From: Macrostomum lignano
Taxonomy: Eukaryota
Reading direction: 5' to 3'
Length of the DNA stretch: 64,000 bases
Assembly (NCBI GenBank): GCA_002269645.1
Contig: NIVC01001368.1
Coordinates: 62,001 to 126,000, forward strand
Shown here: positions 25,757 through 26,689 of the stretch, one piece after another
Layout of the letters: each line of letters opens with the position of its first letter
Position numbering within the stretch: the first letter of the stretch is position 1
The notes under the pieces: model-generated
Databases searched by the model: none
Seen by the model: only the letters and a program-made list of their open reading frames with translations
What the model was told of the DNA's origin: nothing
Translations under genes and position numbers: made by a program

Positions 25757-26689
25757 TCAGACGGCAAGGCGCCGGCTGCGCCTCGGCTCCGACTGGAGAC
25801 TCGCCTCAGAAGGCCGCTGCGGCTCCTCGCGTTCATCGCAGTCGGAGTGACTGACAGCGGCAGCGGCGGTGGCGGCCGCCGCTCGCAGCGTTGCGAGAGC
25901 CCGACGTTTGGCTCTGGTTGCAGCGGCCACCTGCTGATGCTGGTGCAGCAGTTGGCTGTCGCTGTGCCTGCCGAATTCAAGGCAGTCAGCAGCACCATTA
26001 ACAGTTTTGGACTGCTCGCGCGGTTGCGGAGATGACCGGCACTGCTGCAGCGGTCCGGGCGTCTCCGGGTCAGAGGCCAAGGGGCTCGGCCTCGGTGCAT
26101 GCGGCACCGACAGCTGCTGGAGAGTCGGTCGATTCTTCATTCTACGAAGGCTTGGTGGCAAGGCGAGCCAGCGTAGGCGAGCGGGCACGGCGGCGGAGGC
26201 GGCTACAGCTGTGGCCCGATAGCAGCAGAGGAAGTCGAGGAAGGCCACGGTGGAGACGGGCCGGCCGGTGTGGGGGTCCAAGCGGAGCTCCGGCGGTGGC
26301 GGCTGCGAGCAGTGCTGGCGCGTCGCGCATTTTGGCGCCGCTGGCGCAGCAATCGAAGTGGCCCGCAACGCCACGGAGGCGGCTGGTGGATCGGCGGCTG
26401 GTGTAGGAGCAGCAGGGGTGGCGTTGGCGTCGGCGGCCATCGAGCGCTCCACGGTGCGGCGGCTCACTGGCCGGCCGTCGCGGAGGCTGAGGATGAGCGC
26501 CTTGCGCAGCTGCGCCTCCTCGCGCCACGGCAGGCCGAGAAAGTCGCCGCATGGTGCCGGCCGGCTGGGCGCTCCGGCGGGCGGGCCGCTGTGGGACCGC
26601 AGCTGGCGATGCCGCAGCTGCTGGCCGGGGCGGCGCTTCTGCTGCTTTTTCTTTTTTTGACGCGCCCCAGCCTGCAACAACGAGCGCAT
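25757..26689 (-). CDS. JARID2: JARID2 N-terminus-like protein (UIM + SUZ12-binding motif), 310 aa, no JmjC/ARID visible
   Basis: LGLPWREEAQLRKALILSL matches the JARID2 UIM ([19 protein letters not shown]), and RPVSTVAFLDFLCCYR matches JARID2 [14 protein letters not shown], in the same order. GC3-rich codons; CATTTCAG acceptor ~30 nt upstream of the ATG. Confidence 0.62.
   Translation of the reverse strand: MRSLLQAGARQKKKKQQKRRPGQQLRHRQLRSHSGPPAGAPSRPAPCGDFLGLPWREEAQLRKALILSLRDGRPVSRRTVERSMAADANATPAAPTPAADPPAASVALRATSIAAPAAPKCATRQHCSQPPPPELRLDPHTGRPVSTVAFLDFLCCYRATAVAASAAVPARLRWLALPPSLRRMKNRPTLQQLSVPHAPRPSPLASDPETPGPLQQCRSSPQPREQSKTVNGAADCLEFGRHSDSQLLHQHQQVAAATRAKRRALATLRAAAATAAAAVSHSDCDEREEPQRPSEASLQSEPRRSRRLAV

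Follow-up and report, generated by a model that had tools for sequence, protein, structure and literature searches.

The N-terminal part of human JARID2 meets both ubiquitin and the nucleosome surface. In a cryo-electron microscopy (cryo-EM) structure of Polycomb repressive complex 2 (PRC2) with AEBP2 and JARID2 on a nucleosome ubiquitinated at histone H2A K119 (H2AK119ub), JARID2 residues 24-41 form a ubiquitin-interacting motif (UIM) helix on the ubiquitin Ile44 patch, and the Lys/Arg-rich residues 42-57 lie on the H2A-H2B acidic patch (bioRxiv 10.1101/2020.04.20.049213). JARID2 fragments stimulate PRC2 on the H2AK119ub nucleosomes, with a primary activation via trimethylated K116 (K116me3) and a secondary, modest one via the UIM (bioRxiv 10.1101/2020.04.20.049213). 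Here, we examine a 64,000-nucleotide stretch of the flatworm Macrostomum lignano genome (assembly GCA_002269645.1, contig NIVC01001368.1, positions 62,001-126,000; the window), where an open reading frame (ORF) at 25757-26689 on the minus strand appears to encode only this N-terminal part. Which parts of JARID2 matter in vivo is debated, and we know of no agreed function for its catalytically dead Jmj half.

We consider it probable, at roughly 0.6, that the ORF is a functional single-exon gene for a largely disordered protein of ~305-310 amino acids (aa), which is homologous to the PRC2-interacting N-terminal part of JARID2 only and serves as a PRC2 tether. A sequence-only reading of this DNA had proposed such a stand-alone module, and at the sequence level the proposal holds, with the ORF core matching a tapeworm protein at E = 2e-4 among 1.84 billion proteins and a two-block flatworm profile reaching JARID2 at 4.3e-8 in PDB. 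The 310-aa ORF with its TGA end is the annotated Mlig000251.g2, being 100% identical to the NCBI entry 'hypothetical protein BOX15_Mlig000251g2, partial' of M. lignano. Its parts are as follows.

25757..26689, minus strand: apparent stand-alone JARID2 N-terminal-like gene, 310 codons including the TGA stop; Mlig000251.g2 and its paralogues
26456..26548, minus strand: block 1, residues 48-78, GDFLGLPWREEAQLRKALILSLRDGRPVSRR, UIM and Arg-rich tail, corresponding to human JARID2 17-46
26300..26332, minus strand: KCATRQHCSQP, residues 120-130, the proposed K116-equivalent segment with K120
26156..26299, minus strand: block 2, residues 131-178, PPELRLDPHTGRPVSTVAFLDFLCCYRATAVAASAAVPARLRWLALPP, corresponding to human JARID2 ~138-177, the SUZ12-binding segment
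25853..25996, minus strand: long predicted helix, residues 232-279, with the top model confidence (pLDDT 80-88)

Block 1 contains the UIM-like segment at residues 52-71 (about 26477-26536). As read from the sequence, the UIM consensus phi-xx-A-xxx-S-xx-acidic is satisfied by L61, A64, S68 and D71, which stand with E57-E58 in the canonical register and are followed by RDGRPVSRRTVER. The stretch aligned with the human JARID2 UIM comprises the UIM and the basic tail, GLPWREEAQLRKALILSLRD. In BLASTP, ORF residues 49-86 match human JARID2 17-54 with 14 identities over 38 positions (32.3 bits, pairwise E 7e-6). None of 5000 shuffles reached the observed score against the matching human segment, in agreement with the earlier recognition of the UIM.

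Block 2 contains FLDFLCCYR at residues 150-158 (26216-26242), which had been pointed out as a SUZ12-binding motif. Its pattern is PPPE..GRPV..FLDFLCCY..LRW versus the human PPPA......MVYF, and PPPPELRLDPHTGRPVSTVAFLDFLCCY...ARLRWL aligns gap-free with the human JARID2 segment ending in SMVYF. We take this human segment to be the one contacting SUZ12 in the PRC2 structures 5WAI and 6C23. Just one of 5000 shuffles scored as high as the FLDFLC block, so at the sequence level the motif is sustained too.

In an AlphaFold2 prediction made from this sequence alone, residues 55-70, 77-86 and 147-166 are helical. The mean pLDDT is 54, and most of the chain consists of Ala/Pro/Arg-rich sequence with predicted disorder. 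The helix of residues 232-279 has no similarity to human JARID2 166-283, and domain 3 of the tapeworm profile (below) is not significant there.

The pairwise E of 7e-6 is not database proof by itself, so unbiased database searches were made. When ORF residues 40-175 were compared exhaustively by phmmer with a set of 1.84 billion representative proteins, three matched: the ORF protein itself, a zinc-finger repeat protein (P0002) and, from the tapeworm Rodentolepis nana, a protein of 562 aa (P0003, E = 2e-4). We rejected P0002 as a relative, this being a spurious match of the exhaustive search. P0003 matches the ORF in two collinear pieces (1e-6 and 2e-4) and human JARID2 in the same two collinear pieces, with 7e-8 at the UIM and 7e-5 at the DF(V/L)xFLC segment.

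Profile searches arrive at JARID2 as well. A tapeworm-only profile has human JARID2 as its best match (E = 1.4e-3) among 177,635 distinct PDB sequences. Because MAFFT misaligned the FLDFLC block between the full-length M. lignano and Rodentolepis proteins, we built a block alignment of M. lignano and six tapeworms, called A4. Its profile finds JARID2 chains as the best four matches in the same PDB set (E = 4.3e-8), in two collinear domains at human 8-57 and 149-177. The 5WAI and 6C23 JARID2 chains are among the matches, those without the UIM are still matched through block 2, and the next match after JARID2 is the yeast Vps27 UIM at E = 0.15. The sequence-only reading had staked its case on JARID2 residues ~20-165, and these two domains are the significant alignment found by the profile.

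The remaining comparisons are consistent with this. Aligned by hhalign to human JARID2 1-283, a reference identical to PDB 6WKR chain B, A4 has a probability of 92.7%. On the ORF, the tapeworm-only hidden Markov model (HMM) scores 18.2 bits at the UIM and 25.0 bits at block 2, again collinearly. Hence, homology of both blocks to the JARID2 N terminus is well supported, because the database searches, profiles, collinearity and shuffle tests agree. A word-indexed search with the whole ORF matched only itself, probably because low-complexity words crowded out the relatives.

A search with P0003 extends the family to seven further tapeworm genera, where the proteins have 425-568 aa and no Pfam domain in any of them.

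Tapeworm 'hypothetical protein' members: Rodentolepis nana VDN95871.1, Hymenolepis, Anoplocephala, Taenia, Echinococcus multilocularis, Hydatigera, Mesocestoides

Like the M. lignano ORF, they are short stand-alone proteins with both blocks and without a Pfam domain. The M. lignano protein has both blocks in order, is shorter than 600 aa and is equally free of Pfam domains. Invariant between them are D..G..W.EE...RKA...SLR and G.PV...F.DFLC.Y....L.W. As judged by these alignments, the M. lignano and tapeworm proteins define a short flatworm family homologous to the JARID2 N-terminal PRC2-interaction module. No description of a flatworm JARID2 or of a short two-block family was found in the literature searched.

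The tapeworm members differ from the M. lignano one in several respects. They are longer (425-568 versus 310 aa) and multi-exon, whereas the M. lignano ORF has no intron, and their blocks are ~235-295 residues apart versus 98. They also carry blocks of their own, namely PHPR(K/Q)SRPLPGDLSHQFLF, EVLVEDDDG.IVPQ, the histone H3-tail-like VARK(S/T) and the C-terminal RSGLRSQ..RRTRRQQ. These tapeworm-specific blocks (PHPRKSRPLPG..SHQFLF, EVLVEDDDG, VARK(S/T) and RSGLRSQ..RRTRRQQ) are absent from the ORF, to which the tapeworm HMM aligns by the two shared blocks only. A likeness of M. lignano RRMKNRPTLQQLS to tapeworm PRKSRPLPGDLS was discarded for non-collinearity, the one standing after the FLDFLC block and the other before it.

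The tapeworm proteins are complete short proteins rather than truncated models, because the C-terminal tail RSGLRSQ..RRTRRQQ before the stop is common to Hymenolepis, Taenia, Echinococcus and Mesocestoides. In Echinococcus multilocularis, the relative spans 8.5 kb with at least 8 exons, and 640 bp beyond it lies an unrelated RNase_Zc3h12a gene. A tapeworm intron lies directly after ...FVDFLC(F/Y)YG (L002 13835-14020; P0016, P0017). It is seen as read-through in single-exon calls of other assemblies and in the Echinococcus exon map.

Two short tapeworm segments resemble the histone H3 tail. PHPRKSRP at P0003 127-136 is similar to the RKSxP context of H3K27, and its Lys is replaced by Gln in three Hymenolepis/Rodentolepis species. 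VARK(S/T) at P0003 404-410 is invariant in tapeworms and similar to ARKS of the H3 tail. Given this resemblance, each of them might serve PRC2 as a pseudo-substrate or stand in for K116 as an EED ligand.

The ORF is a protein-coding single-exon gene under purifying selection. The gene occurs three times in GCA_002269645.1, every time in the order of TCP1 chaperonin, MIF, the ORF, RanGAP-like leucine-rich repeat (LRR) gene and Arf/Rab GTPase. The divergent copy (L003) has 21 nucleotide differences from the ORF and no indel, with 11 synonymous and 7 non-synonymous codon changes. This gives dN 0.013, dS 0.050 and dN/dS 0.27 (NG86), and the 7:11 ratio of non-synonymous to synonymous changes departs from the neutral ~3:1 (binomial p = 0.0012). 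All seven amino-acid replacements fall outside both conserved blocks.

In the flanks, identity between the copies is 92-96% and gaps are numerous. Only the ORF frame is free of stops up to its terminal one; in each of the others, the reading is interrupted. The M. lignano gene models come from a genome-guided RNA-seq assembly, in which units are cut at mapped trans-splice and poly(A) sites (PMC5730564). The purifying selection on a real gene follows from the low dN/dS and the lack of indels together with the RNA-based model and the gapped flanks.

The ORF also appears to stand alone. There is no JmjN, ARID, JmjC or C5HC2 zinc finger in it (no Pfam match at E <= 10) and no GTRAGT-type donor, and all three copies have the in-frame TGA. 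In tblastn, human JARID2 550-1246, a query checked against PDB 7KSO, matches nothing in the 64-kb window, in any of the three M. lignano loci or at the Echinococcus locus. Next on this strand comes the RanGAP-like LRR gene, with its ATG at 23856, 1.9 kb downstream. Both the missing donor and the missing JmjN/ARID/JmjC exons before RanGAP had been noticed from the sequence, rightly. The searches together indicate that the ORF is a stand-alone JARID2 N-terminal module and not the first exon of a JmjC gene. By domain architecture it is outside the JARID2 family, because the Jmj, ARID and zinc-finger half is absent.

For K116 the outcome differs. The sequence-only reading had placed ATRQHCSQP on human AQRKFAQSQP with Gln at K116, and this placement is not supported. 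When residues 73-131 are compared with the human K116 neighborhood, 4733 of 5000 inter-motif shuffles score at least as high as observed, which is the chance level, and the tapeworm relatives have no conserved counterpart at this position. In the gap-free block alignment, the PPPP following ATRQHCSQ stands opposite human P138-P140, ~20 residues past K116, so ATRQHCSQ itself would fall opposite human ~130-137 and not 113-121.

K120 offers another candidate. This is the only lysine between the blocks, and its context P-A-A-P-K-C-A can be aligned to A-Q-R-K116-F-A on A-x-x-K-x-A and also resembles the H3K27 context A-A-R-K-S-A. The K120 alignment is about as plausible as the Gln one, and neither is significant. 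The further claim that the protein lacks allosteric activation is therefore not established, as the Gln alignment is at chance and K120 is an alternative. Across the family, the candidates for an activating lysine would be RKS and ARKS/T in tapeworms, with Lys-to-Gln in Hymenolepis, and at most K120 in M. lignano.

By analogy to human JARID2, the protein probably bridges H2AK119ub nucleosomes and PRC2. The UIM helix would sit on the H2AK119ub ubiquitin with the following arginines on the H2A-H2B acidic patch, and the FLDFLC segment would dock on SUZ12. In this way the protein, a PRC2.2-type cofactor pared down to an adaptor, could tether or stabilize PRC2 on nucleosomes that carry the PRC1 mark. 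Without a K116 equivalent, mainly tethering or a longer residence time would be expected; if K120 is methylated, both tethering and activation would be possible. Some family proteins may, judging from their lysine contexts, recruit PRC2 without activating it or compete at the SUZ12 site.

Expression of the gene seems to involve trans-splicing and a neighbor. Two features are relevant.

26672..26680, minus strand: acceptor-like ttgttgcag, probable spliced-leader trans-splice site, nine bases inside the ORF start
28299-28742, minus strand: intronless MIF / D-dopachrome tautomerase-family gene (Pfam MIF, E = 1.7e-32), 1.6 kb upstream of the ORF

The M. lignano spliced leader terminates in ATG (PMC8629364). 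Joined to GCT at 26671, the leader ATG is in frame with the ORF, and ttgttgcag is kept in the paralogue. The annotated coding sequences are 5'-partial and begin 7-11 codons inside the ORF. The protein thus probably starts with M-A-G-A-R-Q-K-K-K-K from the spliced leader's own AUG. The suffix 'g2' of Mlig000251.g2 denotes the second gene of a transcription unit. As MIF lies upstream on the same strand, it is probably the first gene of the unit that also yields the JARID2-N-like mRNA. The mRNA would then be made by spliced-leader trans-splicing from a unit shared with MIF, with the leader AUG as the start.

The alternatives differ in what they make of this evidence. The ORF might be fortuitous, or a pseudogene in decay, in a region that is GC-rich, poor in stops and set between repeats; several overlapping ORFs of 60-150 aa lie in other frames, and the protein is largely low-complexity and predicted disordered. 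This reading is highly improbable and already largely refuted by the dN/dS of 0.27, the indel-free copies amid flanks that gain gaps, the single open frame, the RNA-based gene model and the database-significant tapeworm homology. An unrelated disordered ubiquitin-binding protein with a UIM and no link to PRC2, alike to JARID2 by convergence or chance, is improbable too, though slightly less so. UIMs are short and recurrent, the flatworm profile touches that of Vps27, and the K116 region fails to align. The match, however, exceeds the UIM consensus, with G-I/L-P-W-x-E-E ahead of the UIM and R-K within it, and it goes on, in JARID2 order, to another block (PPP..FLxFLC..) that is not part of the UIM. 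JARID2 moreover fills the top four places among the PDB sequences and is matched via block 2 even in chains that have no UIM.

Two more alternatives concern a Jmj half elsewhere. Were the ORF the 5' exon of a longer JARID2 gene whose distant Jmj exons the annotation missed, the 'partial' flag of the annotated coding sequence would fit, and minisatellites around the locus are able to break the transcript assembly. But the flag is 5' only and is explained by a trimmed spliced leader, the TGA is kept in 3/3 copies of a donor-free ORF, RanGAP begins 1.9 kb downstream on the same strand, no Jmj/ARID similarity is found in the window and loci, and the tapeworm orthologues end without Jmj/ARID domains, so that little chance is left for it. 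An extra truncated paralogue, a partial duplicate acting as a modulator or SUZ12-site competitor beside a canonical JmjC-bearing JARID2 in M. lignano, is unlikely but deserves more weight. M. lignano has a hidden polyploid genome in which duplicates are numerous (PMC5730564), and an intronless gene, against at least 8 exons in the Echinococcus relative, would suit a retrocopy made from the 5' part of a messenger. The scope of the Jmj-domain search, which is the window and the related loci, also speaks for the duplicate and to that extent against the tether gene as the only JARID2 form. On the other side, seven tapeworm genera show the short form only, among all matches, and the exhaustive search with the ORF core gave no longer flatworm protein with both blocks. 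For Schistosoma mansoni, the published JmjC inventories name two proteins of the JARID type, each nearest KDM5, and no JARID2 (PMC4159997, PMC7077139).

Some results count against the stand-alone PRC2 tether itself. The Pfam UIM model (PF02809) has no match in the ORF, nor does any Pfam family at E <= 10, and single-sequence phmmer of the ORF against PDB fails to reach JARID2. The conserved blocks are short (~30 and ~45 residues), the remainder being low-complexity and Ala/Pro/Arg-rich, and an activating lysine of the K116 type is not demonstrably present. The function is carried over from human JARID2 by analogy. No trematode or planarian member was found, and the family is so far seen in Macrostomum and tapeworms only, short of a phylum-wide distribution. 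A4, used in a word-indexed search, gave only single-exon fragments of other tapeworm assemblies and no trematode, planarian or non-flatworm invertebrate JARID2. Finally, there is no AATAAA or ATTAAA between the ORF stop and the RanGAP start codon (23856-25756, minus strand). The 3' end may depend on another, non-canonical signal; alternatively, the ORF and RanGAP downstream of it may be parts of one polycistronic unit.

Beyond the single gene, it is tentatively suggested that flatworms, from the early-branching Macrostomum to tapeworms, reduced JARID2 to an adaptor of 300-570 aa with UIM and SUZ12 dock, in which the Jmj/ARID half is lost and the activating lysine is labile. If such a lineage-wide reduction is true, the PRC1-to-PRC2 bridging is the part of JARID2 that evolution kept. 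The tapeworm 'hypothetical proteins' can now be named and assigned a role open to testing. In M. lignano, a model for stem cells and regeneration in which transgenesis and RNA interference are available, the gene is a small tractable handle on the PRC1-to-PRC2 communication in neoblasts.

The DNA around the gene is rich in repeats, two of which flank it closely.

25164..25754, no strand: minisatellite of 44-bp units, 13.5 copies, starting 3 bp past the stop codon
26736..27091, no strand: minisatellite of 22-bp units, 16 copies, ~50 bp upstream of the ORF

A minisatellite at 12457-17308 extends over 4.9 kb with 173 copies of a 28-bp unit (95% matches), and in addition to it at least 15 arrays with units of 15-63 bp fill the intergenic DNA across the window. 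An interstitial telomere-like array stands at 27698-28030, between MIF and the ORF, and is made of ~53 copies of AGGGTT, the telomeric TTAGGG in rotated form; it may be of interest given the reported history of chromosome fusion and duplication in M. lignano. Elsewhere in the window (40231-42573, minus strand), PHD fingers and a zinc finger of the MYST family are encoded by ORFs that may be exons of a KAT6-like MYST histone acetyltransferase, which would be another chromatin regulator in this DNA.

Compared with JARID2 of vertebrates and Drosophila (human ~1-180), the ORF protein shares the UIM signature G-I/L-P-W-x-E-E-xxx-R-K-x-L-x-L-S-L-K/R-E/D, a basic stretch past the UIM and then, in the same order, the SUZ12-docking segment of PPP...DFLxFLC...hydrophobic-aromatic type. 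The two blocks are similarly spaced, ~100 residues apart in the ORF and ~135 in human JARID2. UIM position 64 is the canonical Ala in the ORF protein and Val32 in human JARID2. The ORF protein has no JmjN, ARID, JmjC or C5HC2 zinc finger, and is 310 aa long versus 1246. It also has no demonstrable K116 motif and no counterpart of human 200-450, while its C-terminal helix is unique.

PALI1 and EZHIP are likewise short, mostly disordered PRC2 cofactors that act through short linear motifs. They work via lysine or K27M-like mimic peptides on EED or EZH2, and not via a UIM and a SUZ12 dock. No sequence relationship to the flatworm protein is seen.

The laboratory fragments JARID2 1-450 and 106-450 (PDB 6WKR, 6C23) come closer. 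They are also without Jmj and ARID, yet bind PRC2; unlike the flatworm protein, they carry K116 and the 200-450 region. Judged by its sequence, the flatworm gene seems to be their natural counterpart. A natural JARID2 of the H2Aub reader and the SUZ12 dock only would be an evolutionary deletion experiment.

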